Shown here: one piece after another, positions 35,601-59,295 of the stretch
Layout of the letters: each line of letters starts with the position of its first letter
Position numbering within the stretch: position 1 is the first letter of the stretch
Assembly: GCA_943704425.1 (NCBI GenBank)
Contig: CALSCP010000013.1
Coordinates: forward strand, 11,236 to 75,235
Length of the DNA stretch: 64,000 nucleotides
From: Ministeria vibrans ATCC 50519
Lineage: Eukaryota > Protista > Filasterea
Direction: 5' to 3'
Program-made: the position numbers and the translations under genes
Notes under the pieces: generated by a model
Seen by the model: only the letters and a program-made list of their open reading frames with translations
Databases searched by the model: none
What the model was told of the DNA's origin: nothing

Positions 35601-36143
35601 CGACAGGTGGAGGCGATGCGCGAAGGGTTTGCGGCGGTACTGCCGGCGGGATCGCTGGTGCCGTTTGACGCGAACGAGGTGGAGGTGCTTGTGTGTGGAA
35701 GTGGGGTGTGGCAGTGGGACGTGAAGACGCTGAGTGACTGTTGCCGACCCGACCATGGGTACACGTCAATGTCGCGTGCTGTTGTGTGGCTCTACGAGGT
35801 GCTCACGGAGATGGACGTGGATGCGCAGCGTGCCTTTCTCACGTTTGCGACGGGCAGTCCTCGCTTGCCCGTTGGCGGCCTCAGTGCCCTGCGCCCACCG
35901 CTGACCATTGTGCGCAAGACCATGGCCGACGAGGTGGAGGATAGCAGTCTGCCCAGTGTCATGACCTGTCAGAATTACCTGAAGCTTCCAGGTACGCACA
36001 TGCAAAGCGCATGGAACAACTTGTTTTAAATGTTTTTTTTTGTGTGTGTGTGTGCGTCTTTAGATTACTCGAGCAAGGATGTCTTGAAGGAAAAGTTGTA
36101 TTTGGCGATGAGTGAGGGTGTTGGGAGTTTCCATTTGAGTTAA
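29260..36143 (+). CDS. TRIP12: HECT E3 ubiquitin ligase TRIP12/UFD4/UPL3
   Basis: ARM region (LSMGTEETL, ACRALTNMMEALP, IEYIDLAEQSL); FRREGV; KLTAKLTRQLQDP; GTGLGPTLEFY; TGSPRLPVGG; LPSVMTCQNYLKLP|DYSSK..GSFHLS*. Confidence 0.95.
30643..30783. repeat. (ATT)n intronic microsatellite
   Basis: Seen directly. Confidence 0.95.
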
Positions 36144-36460
36144 GAAGAGGGGTGTGTGTGAGAGTGGAAATGAAAGAGAGAGACCATTTTGAAAGGAAGT
36201 CTTTTTGTTATTTTAGACCATTTGATATAGAGAACGTTTGAAAATAATTCCTTTTAGGCTATTTGAAAAGAAGGTTTTTTAGATCATTTGAAAAGAATGG
36301 CATTCAATCGCTAAAAAGAAGTAGGCAGTAGACACTTGACTACTAAATCAGCAGTAAATAATGATTATAAATCAATGATGAATGAAAATATGAAAATAAT
36401 ATGAATGAAAATTAAATCATTATTTTTCTTTGCACTATCGATTTGATCGACTGACGCACC

Positions 36461-36568
36461 ATGACTGAGTCAGTCAAAGGGCGAGCAAAGGGCTGGGATG
36501 GTTTGATCGTGTTGACTGGTGTGTATCGCGCGCAGCGAGTTGTTTCCCCTCTCACTCTCTCTCTCTCA

Positions 36569-36623
<55 letters not shown>

Positions 36624-39600
36624 NNNNNNNNNNNNNNNNNNNNNNNNNNNNNNNNNNNNNNNNNNNNNNNNNNNNNNNNNNNNNNNNNNNNNNNNNNNNN
36701 NNNNNNNNNNNNNNNNNNNNNNNNNNNNNNNNNNNNNNNNNNNNNNNNNNNNNNNNNNNNNNNNNNNNNNNNNNNNNNNNNNNNNNNNNNNNNNNNNNNN
36801 NNNNNNNNNNNNNNNNNNNNNNNNNNNNNNNNNNNNNNNNNNNNNNNNNNNNNNNNNNNNNNNNNNNNNNNNNNNNNNNNNNNNNNNNNNNNNNNNNNNN
36901 NNNNNNNNNNNNNNNNNNNNNNNNNNNNNNNNNNNNNNNNNNNNNNNNNNNNNNNNNNNNNNNNNNNNNNNNNNNNNNNNNNNNNNNNNNNNNNNNNNNN
37001 NNNNNNNNNNNNNNNNNNNNNNNNNNNNNNNNNNNNNNNNNNNNNNNNNNNNNNNNNNNNNNNNNNNNNNNNNNNNNNNNNNNNNNNNNNNNNNNNNNNN
37101 NNNNNNNNNNNNNNNNNNNNNNNNNNNNNNNNNNNNNNNNNNNNNNNNNNNNNNNNNNNNNNNNNNNNNNNNNNNNNNNNNNNNNNNNNNNNNNNNNNNN
37201 NNNNNNNNNNNNNNNNNNNNNNNNNNNNNNNNNNNNNNNNNNNNNNNNNNNNNNNNNNNNNNNNNNNNNNNNNNNNNNNNNNNNNNNNNNNNNNNNNNNN
37301 NNNNNNNNNNNNNNNNNNNNNNNNNNNNNNNNNNNNNNNNNNNNNNNNNNNNNNNNNNNNNNNNNNNNNNNNNNNNNNNNNNNNNNNNNNNNNNNNNNNN
37401 NNNNNNNNNNNNNNNNNNNNNNNNNNNNNNNNNNNNNNNNNNNNNNNNNNNNNNNNNNNNNNNNNNNNNNNNNNNNNNNNNNNNNNNNNNNNNNNNNNNN
37501 NNNNNNNNNNNNNNNNNNNNNNNNNNNNNNNNNNNNNNNNNNNNNNNNNNNNNNNNNNNNNNNNNNNNNNNNNNNNNNNNNNNNNNNNNNNNNNNNNNNN
37601 NNNNNNNNCCTTTCTCTATCTTTTACTTTTTCTCTTTCTCTATCTTTCTCTCTTTCTCCCTCCTTTCTCTCTCTTACTTTTTCTCGTTTATCTCTCTTTT
37701 ACTTTTTTTTTCTTCTCTACCTTTCTCTTTTTCTCCCTCCTTTCTTTCTCTCTCTTTCTCTCTCTCTCTCTCTCGTTTTCCCTTTACGGTGATTGTGTAG
37801 GTTTGGCGAGTACGAAACGTTGAGTCGTAAGTTGAACGAATCGTCGATGGGAGGGGAGGCGCTCGTGCCGCTACTGGCACGTGTGGATGCGTGCATTGCG
37901 TATACCGGAAGCCACGGGCAGTACAAGGATGCGCTTGTTTATTTGACGAGGTAGTAGCAACGTCTCTCACGCTGTGGGGCGGGTGGGTGTTGACTAAACA
38001 AGTGAGTGTAGGTTTCGTCAGTGTCTGTCACGTGCACTGGACATGGTGCGCAAGTACATCACAACGACTCTCAAGGACGCAACAACACAGTGTTTCGCAC
38101 AGGCGAGCGTACAACGCAAGGGTGCCGCTTCCGCCGCCGCCACGGGCACTACCGCATCCGCCTCCGCGTCGTTGTCGTCGTCGCAGGCGGCACATCCCGC
38201 CCAGTCTGGGCCCCTTGCCGATCTTGTTCTCTACTATGGTCGTTTCCGCACCCATGCTCCGCGTGTCAGTCCCCTTCTCGCTGAGGTCTCGTTTTTGTTC
38301 ATCTGTATTTGTTAGTATTGACAGTGGTTTCTTTTGTGTATTTAGCTGCGTGCTCGAGGAGAGTCGCAGGGTGGAGTTTATCGTGCATGTTTGGACGACT
38401 GTCGCTCGTGCTATCTCAATCAGGTCCTATCCGTTTATTGCTTTTGTATAGTGTGTTGATTTTGTGGTTGGCTGTTTAGAGACACGCTCTTATTGGTCCA
38501 ATCATCGCCTCTCGAGCAGCTGCTCTTCAATCGTACGGAACTGGCTTTTGCTTCTTGGTTTTACTTTTTGTTTCTATCTCTTTTCTTATTTTTTTGTTTT
38601 TATCTTTTATCACTTTCTTTTCAATCGCTTTCTTCGCTCTATCACTGTCTTGTCGCTATCACTTTCTTCTCTCTGCCACATTCTTCTTTCTATCACATTC
38701 TTCTCTCTCTGTTCTCTGTCACTTTGTTCTCGCTATCACTTTCTTCTCTTCACCACTTTCTTTTATCACATTCTTCTCTCTCTATCACTTTGTTCTTTTT
38801 TCTCTCTTTATCACTCACACTGCTTTTTCCCTCCTTTCTCACCTCCTTGTATGTTGTGTGTTTTGCAGTGACGGAACGACTCTCGTTAATGTGATTCGGG
38901 TGGGGTGCGATGCACTGGTACGCATTGCTCGCGATGAGTATGATCTGTATGTGCACTTCTTTGCTCAGCCCGATGAGCATTTGGATTCGCTTTTGGACTC
39001 GCTTGCACAGCCCTTTTACGATTTGTTTCGGTACTACGAAAAATGGACTGGTCGCGTGTGTTTTAACTGTGTGTTTCTTTCTTCTTGTAGACCGTTGATT
39101 ATCAAGCAGAACAGCATCGAGACACTGTGCGAGGTGTGCATGGTATTGCACAGCGAGATCCTGAGCAACCAGCACACATCGAGTGGAGTGGGTAGTGGAG
39201 GTGGAAGTGGAAGTGGCAGTGGGGGAGAGGGCAGTGCCGTCGTGTCGACGGTGACGCAGATGCTTGAGGATGTCCAGCAGCGCCTTGTCTACCGTGTGCA
39301 GGCGTATCTGGACACGGAAGTGCGTCGGTTCAAACCCGCTGCTGACGACCTGTCTTACCCCGATCGGCTGTTGGCTCAACAGCGCAGTGGCGATGGCACC
39401 CTCTCCGACAACACTGCGTCTACCGATGCCTATGCCAAGTGGTACCCGACCGTCCAGCGCACTCTCGTCTGCCTCCACAAACTCTATCGTTGCGTCGACG
39501 TAAGCCACAGTCTAACTCTACGTGAACGTACTGTCGTTATCTGACACTCATCCATATCTACAGCGGGATGTGTTTTCGGGAATTGCAGACGAGGCTCTGG

Positions 39601-40681
39601 CGTACTGCACAGCCTCTCTGCAACGTGCTAGTGCCGCCATTGTCTCTCACGTCGACTCTCAACTTTTTCTCATCTCCCAACTTCTTGTCGTTCGTGAGAG
39701 CATTTCCGCCCTGCACAACATCGACTTTACCGCCCGCGAACAAAAGATCAACTTTTCGTCTCTCAGAGGTATGTTTTTATTATTGCATCCTGTATGTGCA
39801 ATTTTGCGTTTTCTGGGACTCACCTGTCTCTCATGTTGCGCCAGATGCGGCGGCCAGTCTCATCCAGCACCGCAATCGTCTGTTTGCCTTTGACCGCTCC
39901 AATGCACTTCTTGAGTTTCTTCTCGAGGGTGCTCCCCAAGTCACCCTCAGTGTCCACGACTCAAAGAAGGTCCTCACTTTCCTCCACTGTTACTCCGATC
40001 AACTGACTTGTTTCGTTTCTCTGTTTATAGGAGATTGATGTTCTGTTGAAGTCAGTGTGTGAGCGGTTCATTGAGGATACTATCAAATCGATGATCGCGC
40101 CTCTCTCGTCATTTCTCACCAAGGTAGACAGATTCTGTGTTACTGACACGCACGCTCCATCTCATCTTTGTTTTGTGCATAGGTCGATGCGTTTATGCGA
40201 GTGCGTGCCGAATCAAAAACTGGCACCGGCTCGCCCTTGCGCGATCAGCCTTTTGCCCTTCCCGGTACATCAATATTGAATCACTCTCGTTTCGTTCTTC
40301 TCTTGCTCCTCCTCATTTTATTTCTTTTTGTGTTTGATTCGTGTTGACAGAGAAGGTAAAGGTGATGGTGAACGAGGCGTATTTGCTGCTCCGCGCACAG
40401 AGTGACCTGACACATCGCTCGCTCTCTGTCTATCTGTCCAATGCCGATACCGAGTTTATCCTGTTTCGCCCAATCAAATCCGCCATTCTTCTTCAGGTGC
40501 ATATTTTCTGTTTTTTTTTGTGTGTGTCTTGACAGTCACTCTCTTACTCTTTGTACAGTTTGAGCGACTGTGTGCGCTGATTGAGAGCCCCGAGTACACT
40601 GACGACGACCGTTTGGTCATTATGTGTCCGCCTGTCGAACAGATTCGCCTTGAGCTGCAGCCTTCCACCGACCAACCCTAA
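36461..40681 (+). CDS. COG3: Conserved oligomeric Golgi complex subunit 3; 5' part interrupted by a gap
   Basis: LARVDACIAY..YKDALVYLTRFRQCLSRAL; YYGRF; RPLII..IETLCEVC; MLEDVQQRLVYR; WYPTVQRTLVCLHKLYRCVD; YLSNADTEFILFRPIK; start codon uncertain. Confidence 0.9.
36624..37608. other. Assembly gap (N run)
   Basis: Ns flanked by (CT)n. Confidence 1.
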
Positions 40682-41374
40682 AAAAAAATTGTATATCGCG
40701 CCTTTATTAAAATTTTTCTTTTTTCTTTTTTCAGAGAAATGTACTCTCGGTTAACATCTCGTTATTTTCCATCATACGAGATATTTGACAAGCTGTGCAC
40801 ATACCCAACGCCGCAAGAGACGGTGGGAAAAGTGGTAATGTTTGCTCTGCGCTCGTCACTTTCATCTTTCGACGGTGACGTAGTCGCGCTCTCTCATCGC
40901 ATCTGCTCCTGCTCGATTCCGTGGTTTAGAGTAAACTTTCAGGTGACTTCGTGGTCCGATCACAACGAGTCGTCTCGCGGACTTTTCTTTTCTTTTTTTG
41001 AAAACCTAGGATGAAAGCTTCATTGTTCAAGACAATCTAGCCTTTTTTTAATCAAACCTTCAGTTTGGTGCTACTTGTTTGCGTCCAGACACACGTTTGC
41101 TCGTTCATATATGTTATCGTTTCCCTAGAGCGGCTTTCGTCTCGTTCCGCGGGCACAAAAGGCTGTCCGCTCCCGTGCCCCACCAGACTTCTTTTCGAAA
41201 TTAAGCCGTATAAGTTCAAATTTTATGTTTCACATTTCGCGGCTTATAAATGTTTTTTTATTTTTGGCAACCTAAGCACGACATACTGCGAAATACAACA
41301 ATATTTTTACTGTTAATACAACATTATAGACAGCGAAAAACAATATCAAACATTGAAATTTGTTTTGACTGACC

Positions 41375-42253
41375 NNNNNNNNNNNNNNNNNNNNNNNNNN
41401 NNNNNNNNNNNNNNNNNNNNNNNNNNNNNNNNNNNNNNNNNNNNNNNNNNNNNNNNNNNNNNNNNNNNNNNNNNNNNNNNNNNNNNNNNNNNNNNNNNNN
41501 NNNNNNNNNNNNNNNNNNNNNNNNNNNNNNNNNNNNNNNNNNNNNNNNNNNNNNNNNNNNNNNNNNNNNNNNNNNNNNNNNNNNNNNNNNNNNNNNNNNN
41601 NNNNNNNNNNNNNNNNNNNNNNNNNNNNNNNNNNNNNNNNNNNNNNNNNNNNNNNNNNNNNNNNNNNNNNNNNNNNNNNNNNNNNNNNNNNNNNNNNNNN
41701 NNNNNNNNNNNNNNNNNNNNNNNNNNNNNNNNNNNNNNNNNNNNNNNNNNNNNNNNNNNNNNNNNNNNNNNNNNNNNNNNNNNNNNNNNNNNNNNNNNNN
41801 NNNNNNNNNNNNNNNNNNNNNNNNNNNNNNNNNNNNNNNNNNNNNNNNNNNNNNNNNNNNNNNNNNNNNNNNNNNNNNNNNNNNNNNNNNNNNNNNNNNN
41901 NNNNNNNNNNNNNNNNNNNNNNNNNNNNNNNNNNNNNNNNNNNNNNNNNNNNNNNNNNNNNNNNNNNNNNNNNNNNNNNNNNNNNNNNNNNNNNNNNNNN
42001 NNNNNNNNNNNNNNNNNNNNNNNNNNNNNNNNNNNNNNNNNNNNNNNNNNNNNNNNNNNNNNNNNNNNNNNNNNNNNNNNNNNNNNNNNNNNNNNNNNNN
42101 NNNNNNNNNNNNNNNNNNNNNNNNNNNNNNNNNNNNNNNNNNNNNNNNNNNNNNNNNNNNNNNNNNNNNNNNNNNNNNNNNNNNNNNNNNNNNNNNNNNN
42201 NNNNNNNNNNNNNNNNNNNNNNNNNNNNNNNNNNNNNNNNNNNNNNNNNNNNN
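41375..42253. other. Assembly gap (N run)
   Basis: Ns. Confidence 1.
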
Positions 42254-54965: not shown

Positions 54966-57314
<2,349 letters not shown>

Positions 57315-57363: not shown

Positions 57364-58078
57364 TCAGTCGTCGTCGCCCGCAAATAGCCACTTGATGAAC
57401 TTGATTGGTCTGCAGGACAAAGAAAAATTGCGAAGTCAAGGTAAGGGCGATTTGTCTCATGTCTCATCTCAGATGAAATATTCGTACGCTTTAATCAGGT
57501 TCTCGAGAATGTCCGCCTAGAAAAATTAATAATGAAATTTTAGGAAATTTGTGGTTTAGTGTGTAAGTGGTCTGTCTGGTCCTTTCCCGCTTACCATGCA
57601 CTGTATCAAGCAAGCACAAGGGCAGCACAGAAGTTTGACTACAGAGAGAGAGGAGAGAGAGAGAGGAATGTGGTCGAGAATGGAGAGAGCAAAGTAAGAG
57701 TGAGAAGAGCAAAGTAGGAAGGGAGTGGCCAAGAGAATGCATCCGCGCTGCTTCTGAAGCCACTTCTCAGTTCTCGCTTCACACTCCACACACGCGAGGT
57801 GCCTCTCGTCGCGTGCGCAGCAGGGAAGTTCTCATTCAGTCAAAATTCAAAAAAAAAGGCTCCAGACTAAAATGCACTCTGGACTCTGCAGCAACCCGAT
57901 GCTATACTTACACGGCAGGAGAATAATCCAAATGAGAATGCCCAGAAGACTGCAAAAGAGAAAGAGATTAGGAAGTTTTTTATTTCGTCAAAAATACAAC
58001 TTACGAAATAATGCACAAAAGTGGCACGCAAATGAGCAGCGCAATGACCTTGAGAAGGCCCGTAATACAAAAGCACAT
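57364..58078 (-). CDS. 76-aa hydrophobic Cys-rich peptide, Taximin-like (5 micro-exons)
   Basis: Exons 58078-58005, 57949-57912, 57638-57595, 57516-57488, 57409-57364; all introns GT-AG with compatible phases; product MCFCITGLLKVIALLICVPLLCIISLLGILIWIILLPFKLLCCPCACLIQCMADILENLIKAPIKFIKWLFAGDDD. Confidence 0.82.
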
Positions 58079-58257
58079 ACTGAGAGAAAAAAAAGTTATA
58101 ACTTTTGAGTTTTGTCTCATGAGTTCAATCTCAATAATTCAATATCAACTCTCATTGATGAATGACTCCGGAATTCCTTCTTTCAGAATTCAGAATTCTG
58201 AATTGAGACGCACTCTTATAAGTTATAACTTATTTTTCTGATAGAATCTAAACCATC
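58079..58257. promoter_or_regulatory. Putative bidirectional promoter with twin AAGTTATAACTT palindromes
   Basis: Perfect 16-bp palindromes at 58091-58106 and 58218-58233 between divergent ATGs. Confidence 0.5.
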
Positions 58258-59295
58258 ATGTCAAAGGCTACTGTTCGCAAGGCTGCCCCCGCTTTCTCGG
58301 CCACCGCTCTCGTCAATGGCCAGTTCGAAAGTAAATCAAGAAACAGCCGCCATCGCTCTCTTCCCGACTCCCATCCAACTCGACAACAGACACCCTTTCC
58401 CTCCCACGCCATCTCCGTCGCCTTCCATCCTGCTGATTTTCGTCGTGTTTTGCTTGTCATCTCACAATTCACATGTGAATGCGTTTCACGCATCGAATTC
58501 TCTCTCACACCTCCCCGCCCTGCTTACCGATGACACGATTACAGAGTCCTTATGTCATCTATCGATCTGCCCACTACTCGATCGGCTCTCATCCTCTTCC
58601 CTTTCCCCTCTTTTTTTTTTCCAGCAATTTCCCTCGATCAATTCAAGGGCAAGTACGTCGTGCTCTTCTTCTACCCGCTCGACTTTACCTTTGTGTGCCC
58701 CACCGAGATCATCGCGTTCTCGGATCGCGTCAAGGAGTTTGAGAAAATCAACACGATCGTGCTCGCGTGCTCGGTTGACTCGCACTTCTCGCACCTCGCC
58801 TGGACCAACCTCCCCCGCAACAAGGGCGGCCTCGGCGACATGGCCATCCCCATCATCAGCGACCTCACCAAGCAAATCTCCAAGGACTACGGCGTGCTCA
58901 TCGAGGGCGACGACGACGACGCCGGTGTTGCTCTCCGGTACCCACACCTTGCTTGCTTAGTGCGTGTGTCTCACCCATCATCTCATTCTTAATAGCGGAC
59001 TCTTCATCGTCGACGACAAGGGCGTCCTTCGCCAGAGCACCATCAATGATCTTCCGGTGGGCCGCTCCGTCGACGAGACGCTCCGTCTTGTCAACGCATT
59101 CAAGTTTACCGATGAGGTAAATAATAATAATAATTTACAATAACAATAATATAATAATGTTTTTTGGTCTTCTTATTTTTTCATGCATTTGTGTTTTTGC
59201 AGCATGGTGAGGTCTGCCCGGCAGGCTGGACCCCTGGCGCGCCCTCCATGAAGGCCGACCCCAAGGGCTCGCTCGAGTACTTTGGCAAGAAGTAA
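58258..59295 (+). CDS. Typical 2-Cys peroxiredoxin (4 exons)
   Basis: [15 protein letters not shown]; GGLG; [11 protein letters not shown]; HGEVCPAGW; C-terminal YF. Confidence 0.97.

Follow-up and report, generated by a model that had tools for sequence, protein, structure and literature searches.

The TAXIMIN (TAX) peptides are known from plants, and include TbTAX of Taxus as well as TAX1 (At2g31090) and TAX2 (At2g20562) of Arabidopsis. As described by Colling et al. (2015; PMC4526920), these peptides are 73–75 residues long and combine an N-terminal hydrophobic segment, which is predicted to be a signal peptide, with a 46-residue C-terminal part that contains six conserved cysteines. According to the same source the Arabidopsis TAX genes have one intron, and a TAX1-Venus fusion is seen at the plasma membrane only when the N-terminal segment is present; membrane targeting of this kind, or secretion, is documented there for TAX1-Venus and TbTAX. 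The title of the founding paper (Onrubia 2014, as cited in PMC4526920) terms the family conserved and plant-specific, and a PLAZA survey, as given in PMC4526920, places it in land plants only. The literature that we searched on the family also reports it from plants only.

Three complete tomato proteins of 76–79 residues are available in print (Solyc10g008050, Solyc10g008730 and Solyc07g062800; PMC10515272, supplement file 3). Fragments of the Arabidopsis proteins can be decoded from the cloning and qPCR primers of PMC4526920, namely MCDGDC, IIWIVGLLLSCIC and VMEWFMSKIPC for TAX1, and IIGTVLSC and LRWFTHSIPC for TAX2; the mature TAX1, as derived from a primer, begins with IIWIVG. From the three tomato proteins and these fragments we drew a plant signature that comprises an M-C start, followed by S-x-x-G-x-x-[IV]-W-[IL]-[IV], the cysteine cluster C-x-C-P-C-C-x-C, [LM][IV]K[AL]P, W-F and a terminal I-P-C. 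The first block takes the forms SIIGVIVWII, SIVGVIIWIV and SLLGALIWLI in tomato.

Here we describe a gene with five micro-exons, located in the genome of a unicellular, non-plant eukaryote, which probably encodes a divergent homologue of these proteins.

Structure of the gene and its surroundings

The gene occupies 715 bp of the minus strand of the window (the whole 64-kb stretch of DNA that was analysed, to which all positions refer), and is made up of the following exons and introns:

58005..58078, minus strand: exon 1, 74 nt; ATG at 58078, 24 whole codons, end phase 2; encodes the M-C-F-C N-terminus and then a hydrophobic helix
57950..58004, minus strand: intron 1, 55 nt; GTAAGT...TTTTGCAG; GC 0.29
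57912..57949, minus strand: exon 2, 38 nt; S/LLGILIWIILLP/F; bears the S-x-x-G-x-x-I-W-I-I block
57639..57911, minus strand: intron 2, 273 nt; GTAAGT...CTCTGTAG; GC 0.50; acceptor preceded by a long CT-rich tract
57595..57638, minus strand: exon 3, 44 nt; KLLCCPCACLIQCM; cysteine cluster, including the CPC core
57517..57594, minus strand: intron 3, 78 nt; GTAAGC...TTTTCTAG; GC 0.35
57488..57516, minus strand: exon 4, 29 nt; ADILENLIK plus GC; first half of the LIKAPI block
57410..57487, minus strand: intron 4, 78 nt; GTACGA...GTCCTGCAG; GC 0.41; interrupts the Ala codon of LIKAPI
57364..57409, minus strand: exon 5, 46 nt including the TGA stop (57366-57364); A/PIKFIKWLFAGDDD

Reading of the minus strand, translation of each exon and a script agree on these exons, which add up to 231 nt, i.e. 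76 codons and a stop. The codons split at the exon junctions, which were resolved by hand, are TC/T (Ser), T/TC (Phe) and GC/A (Ala), and all four acceptors consist of an AG that follows a pyrimidine-rich tract. If intron 1 is retained the frame runs into an immediate stop (TCG TAA). Exon 4 supplies the LIK of the hexapeptide LIKAPI and the GC of the split codon, and exon 5 the A of that codon and PI, so that LIKAPI exists solely when intron 4 is spliced out. The five exons with canonical donors and the in-frame product of 76 residues had been proposed in an earlier, sequence-only reading of this DNA, and hold exactly to the base; the motifs quoted there (SLLGILIWII, LCCPCAC, LIKAPI and the W) are each found in the spliced peptide, and the TAXIMIN pattern given there is supported at the level of motifs by the real tomato and Arabidopsis sequences. 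Besides its long CT-rich tract, intron 2 has a short hairpin, rich in GC, near 57788-57818, and neither matches an Rfam family.

The gene sits in the 945-bp spacer between the stop codon of a malic-enzyme gene and the ATG of a peroxiredoxin gene, and fills this spacer exactly. The other features of the locus are:

ORF end at 57314, plus strand: malic-enzyme gene, Malic_M domain with E 2e-82, convergent with the TAXIMIN-like gene
58085..58239, unstranded: divergent promoter common to the peroxiredoxin and TAXIMIN-like genes, with a 25-nt inverted repeat
58118..58120, minus strand: alternative upstream ATG, in frame, adding 14 residues for a total of 90
58258-59292, plus strand: 2-Cys peroxiredoxin gene, ATG at 58258, four exons and three introns, divergent from the TAXIMIN-like gene

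As the stop codons of the malic-enzyme and TAXIMIN-like genes (57314 and 57364) have 50 nt between them, the 3' UTRs of the two genes must overlap or be extremely short. On the other side, the arms of the inverted repeat (58085-58109 and 58215-58239, with a GTTATAAC core) are 88% complementary and lie 7–31 nt upstream of the TAXIMIN-like ATG and 19–43 nt upstream of the peroxiredoxin ATG, thereby forming a symmetric element within a 179-bp divergent promoter. The start is more likely to be the ATG at 58078 than the upstream one at 58120, since the latter is on the far side of the GTTATAAC promoter element and its use would hide the plant-like M-C start inside the protein. Between the arms of the repeat there is a perfect palindrome, TTCAGAATTC-n-GAATTCTGAA, and positions 58182-58202 are also listed with this element. 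A search of the locus against Rfam gave nothing near any gathering score; at the promoter repeat there was a weak hairpin-type match to MIR5998 on both strands, far under threshold. Elsewhere in the window, which has 1879 N in total, the GC content falls to 0.21-0.30 per 2-kb bin at 36001-38000 and 40001-42000, which might reflect a gap in the assembly or an AT-rich insert.

Comparison with the plant TAXIMIN proteins

The peptide was compared with the three printed tomato proteins by eye and by means of short motifs, a procedure that yields no E-value. In the by-eye alignment with Solyc10g008050, 17 of the 45 aligned pairs between S-x-x-G and W-F are identical, a count to be read in the light of the inflated similarity of short hydrophobic peptides; about 10 further pairs are conservative, and two gaps of one residue each are required. 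Identity to plant TAX amounts to ~36% in the best-conserved part.

The peptide matches plant blocks one, three and four and the CPC core of block two. Its length of 76 residues falls within the 73–79 of the plant precursors, and it shares with them an M-C start and a cysteine-rich N-terminus (MCC…C in plants, MCFC in the protist), followed by a long hydrophobic N-terminal half that ends in S-x-x-G-x-x-[IV]-W-[IL]-[IV]. The version of this block in the peptide, S-L-L-G-I-L-I-W-I-I, agrees with that of Solyc07g062800 in 8 of 10 positions, while LIKAPI is identical to its counterpart in Solyc10g008050 over all six. The spacing is also the same in both, with 13 residues from CPC to LIKAP and 5 from the proline to the tryptophan.

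The differences are concentrated in the cysteine cluster and at the C-terminus. In place of C-x-C-P-C-C-x-C the peptide has CCPCAC, with the CPC core kept, and its C-terminal part contains five cysteines (those of CCPCAC and one five residues on) as against six in plants. Of the cysteines conserved in plants, two out of six have an exact counterpart and a further three are displaced by one position. The terminal I-P-C is replaced by A-G-D-D-D, so that the sixth cysteine and the third proline are absent, leaving two of the three conserved prolines (those of CPC and KAP). The peptide has one additional residue ahead of the cluster and one more between the W and the F, which gives W-L-F. The gene itself has four introns and five micro-exons as opposed to the one intron of Arabidopsis, and its host is a non-plant protist, whereas the family has been placed in land plants only. 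Since the six-cysteine and three-proline features, which the plant literature takes as defining, are present only in part, we classify the peptide as a divergent TAXIMIN-like homologue and not as a plain member of the family; what is new is probably a divergent, non-plant variant of a known family.

A putative membrane hairpin

Residues 5–47 (~43 in all) form a nearly unbroken hydrophobic stretch that could accommodate two helices and has the conserved S-x-x-G at its midpoint. We infer an S-acylated membrane hairpin, in which this stretch would insert as two helices that turn at the S-x-x-G, stay uncleaved and leave both ends of the protein in the cytosol. The M-C-F-C at the N-terminus and the juxtamembrane CCPCAC would then both lie at the cytosolic face and be S-acylated. 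In the C-terminal segment (ADILENLIKAPIKFIKWLF) hydrophobic residues recur at i, i+3/4 with K/E/D/N between them, and this spacing suggests an amphipathic helix, which might lie on the membrane surface. The uncleaved hairpin is favoured by the conservation of the N-terminal cysteines even though they fall within the supposed plant signal peptide, as a discarded leader would not be expected to keep them. S-acylation would also tolerate the one-position shifts of cysteines better than would a disulfide framework. Alternatively, the first helix may be cleaved as a signal peptide after S-x-x-G, which would yield a single-pass peptide of 48 residues with the same cytosolic cluster and helix. In either form the product would stay in the membrane, consistent with the plasma-membrane location given for TAX1-Venus in PMC4526920; the need of that fusion for its N-terminal segment also counts in favour of the hairpin. 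The hairpin that we prefer over the cleaved form would be a small membrane protein that acts inside its own cell, and not a diffusible hormone.

Two other types of membrane protein offer points of comparison. The CYSTM proteins (PF12734) of eukaryotes are tiny membrane proteins in which a cysteine run lies beside or inside a hydrophobic helix, and the peptide resembles them in its small size and in having a cysteine run by a hydrophobic helix. In CYSTM proteins, however, the cysteine-rich transmembrane segment is at the extreme C-terminus, after a soluble part rich in Pro, Gly and Tyr, whereas in the peptide, as judged by eye, the cluster lies in the middle of the protein and is followed by the predicted amphipathic helix. 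The IFITM/dispanin (CD225) proteins possess two short hydrophobic helices, palmitoylated juxtamembrane cysteines and an amphipathic helix. This is the architecture proposed here for the peptide; the likeness is one of functional analogy, and no sequence similarity was detected or is claimed. Pfam searches with the open frames of exon 1 and exon 3, at E up to 10, returned noise only and no CYSTM match.

The host and the origin of the gene

The contig belongs to a genome assembly of 29.7 Mb in 2860 contigs, which encodes three integrin-beta genes and gives 28 SH2 matches, both spread over contigs C749, C376, C2390 and many others; no LHC (chlorophyll a/b-binding protein) was found in it. The window itself contains further eukaryotic genes, coding for a HECT ligase, TMF, NIPA, a P450 and a PLOD glycosyltransferase domain. 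The integrin-beta genes and SH2 matches, the PLOD domain in the window and the lack of LHC identify the host as non-plant, and it is a unicellular organism of holozoan-like (filasterean-like) type, not a plant or alga. The taxonomic side of the sequence-only reading, that a homologue would here lie outside plants, therefore stands.

The introns of the adjacent peroxiredoxin gene, which could be deduced from the well-known protein sequence of peroxiredoxin, provide a local standard for splicing. These three introns have the donors GTAAAT, GTACCC and GTAAAT, T-rich CAG or TAG acceptors, and lengths of ~50–290 nt; donors in this genome are GTA-biased and otherwise loose. All four introns of the TAXIMIN-like gene match this local style, in that they share GTA-type donors with those of peroxiredoxin, and three of the four are clearly more AT-rich than the exons. 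Codon usage is likewise that of the surroundings: GC3 is 0.63 (over 73 whole codons) as against an exon GC of 0.45-0.50, and codons ending in A make up 8% of the gene, compared to 8% of the flanking malic-enzyme exon and 3% of a peroxiredoxin exon. In a DNA search of the 29.7-Mb assembly the locus matched only itself, which makes it a single-copy gene; searches of this genome for paralogues with the patterns G-x-x-[IV]W[IL][IV] and L[IV]K-GC/GTA gave chance matches only.

Two scenarios might account for a true homologue in such an organism. In the first, which we put forward tentatively and at rather less than even odds, TAXIMIN would be a micro-membrane protein of ancient eukaryotic origin, older than the divergence of plants from the animal/fungal lineage; it would have been overlooked outside plants because its genes are tiny and made of micro-exons, and its "signal peptide" would in fact be the first helix of an S-acylated hairpin. 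Vertical descent of this kind would go along with many copies that were lost or have escaped detection. In the second, the gene would have been acquired horizontally from a land plant or streptophyte (or passed in the reverse direction) and not inherited from an early eukaryotic ancestor. This agrees with the title of Onrubia 2014 and with the PLAZA survey, in so far as these report the family from plants and from land plants only, respectively, and with a single copy that lacks paralogues in the genome. The absence of the family elsewhere is nevertheless weak evidence, as micro-exon genes are so small that annotation easily misses them. Moreover, the identity of ~36% in the best-conserved part, the four host-style introns in place of the one in Arabidopsis, the host-like codon bias and the host genes on both sides all speak against a transfer, or at least imply that any transfer would be old and not recent. 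We consider horizontal acquisition unlikely. Contamination of the contig by plant DNA was ruled out by the same features, namely the host flanking genes, intron style, codon bias and low identity.

Homology, convergence and chance

The extent to which the plant-like blocks might recur fortuitously was estimated from block frequencies in the six-frame translations (~396,000 residues) of the window and unrelated loci, a sample that is biased toward the motifs since many of the loci had been retrieved by them. On this basis the blocks would occur together, spaced as required, with a frequency of ~1e-16 to 1e-17 per start position. At the level of DNA, the signature W-I...CPC...L[IV]KxP...W was sought in 596 Gb of prokaryotic genomes, JGI metagenome contigs and IMG/VR, and found at four loci that represent two independent sequences. 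These matches are bacterial and due to chance, look non-coding, and none of the four is a small hydrophobic ORF. Even when alternative splice paths and the many families to which a likeness might have been noticed are allowed for, chance is not a credible explanation of the TAXIMIN match.

Protein databases were searched exon by exon. A word-index search, whose queries were the open frames of 44, 46 and 77 residues that surround exons 1, 2 and 3, recovered no candidate that shared three words; its length windows of 24-77, 25-80 and 42-135 residues would have made a 76-residue product visible to all three queries, and one of 90 residues to the exon-3 query only. With the 39-residue exon-1 frame, phmmer against 1.84 billion representatives gave one chance match (P0001, a repeat protein of 452 residues), and the ESM Atlas gave bacterial hypothetical proteins at 0.80-0.81, which is noise. 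Thus, for queries from exon 1 to exon 3, the product was not seen in collections of 5.8 billion and 1.84 billion proteins, which shows that it is not present in public protein collections in recognisable form and that the gene is unannotated. These exon-wise searches found no relative anywhere, and hence no second non-plant member. On more remote relatives they are silent, since the conserved blocks either cross splice junctions or are too short.

These results bear on the notion that the gene is real and codes for a small cysteine-rich membrane protein, with a resemblance to TAXIMIN that is convergent or generic (a transmembrane segment, cysteines and an amphipathic helix). The peptide is indeed short and of low complexity, its CCPCAC departs from C-x-C-P-C-C-x-C and the I-P-C end is gone; in addition, no intermediate relatives emerged from the exon-wise searches, and the comparison was one made by eye. 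A generic resemblance would, however, scarcely be expected to include the exact LIKAPI, the S-x-x-G-x-x-I-W-I-I block, the identical spacings of 13 and 5 residues, the M-C start and the length. With a joint chance of ~1e-16 per position and a signature that hardly occurs in over 600 Gb of unrelated DNA, we regard convergence as quite improbable.

Evidence that the gene is real

A more radical view is that there is no gene at all, and that open pieces of the 945-bp intergenic spacer have been joined through chance GT...AG pairs. Four free introns allow many in-frame models in any sequence, the hexamer GTAAGT is not the dominant donor of the genome, and the product is absent from the protein collections queried with exons 1 to 3; the model is built on sequence. 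Against the no-gene view, GTAAGT is rare, occurring 7 times on the minus strand of the 64-kb window, and 2 of these 7 instances are inside the 715-bp stretch of the gene. The four donors all start with GTA like those of the verified neighbouring introns, the four acceptors all follow pyrimidine tracts, the third-position bias matches that of the genes nearby, and a unit with its own promoter element takes up exactly the space between the malic-enzyme and peroxiredoxin genes. Furthermore, a family-specific hexapeptide arises only across a splice junction: as LIKAPI depends on the joining of exons 4 and 5, gene model and homology back each other. A mere juxtaposition of open pieces is therefore highly improbable, and the observation of a five-exon gene beyond what chance would yield is confirmed. 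Taken together, we think it quite likely that the locus is a genuine nuclear gene of a non-plant eukaryote, present in one copy and unannotated, whose five micro-exons would encode a hydrophobic, cysteine-rich divergent homologue of TAXIMIN, 76 residues long, with a predicted S-acylated hairpin.

Implications for the TAXIMIN family

If true, the presence of the family in a single-celled relative of animals would mean that it either goes back much further than land plants or moves horizontally. The motifs kept over such a distance (S-x-x-G, IWI, CPC, LIKAP, W-F and the N-terminal cysteines) would then mark the functionally essential core of these proteins, and the supposed signal peptide, being conserved, speaks for a protein that resides in the membrane over a secreted ligand. 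Should TAXIMIN prove to be an ancient hairpin protein, the "peptide hormone" phenotypes of plants would reflect a cell-autonomous membrane function. These points concern mainly researchers on plant peptides and micro-proteins, and are of moderate general interest. Genes for micro-proteins that are built of micro-exons escape standard annotation, and the "lineage-specific" labels given to such families are accordingly fragile; the TAXIMIN family, hitherto termed plant-specific, is probably older or more widespread than has been thought.
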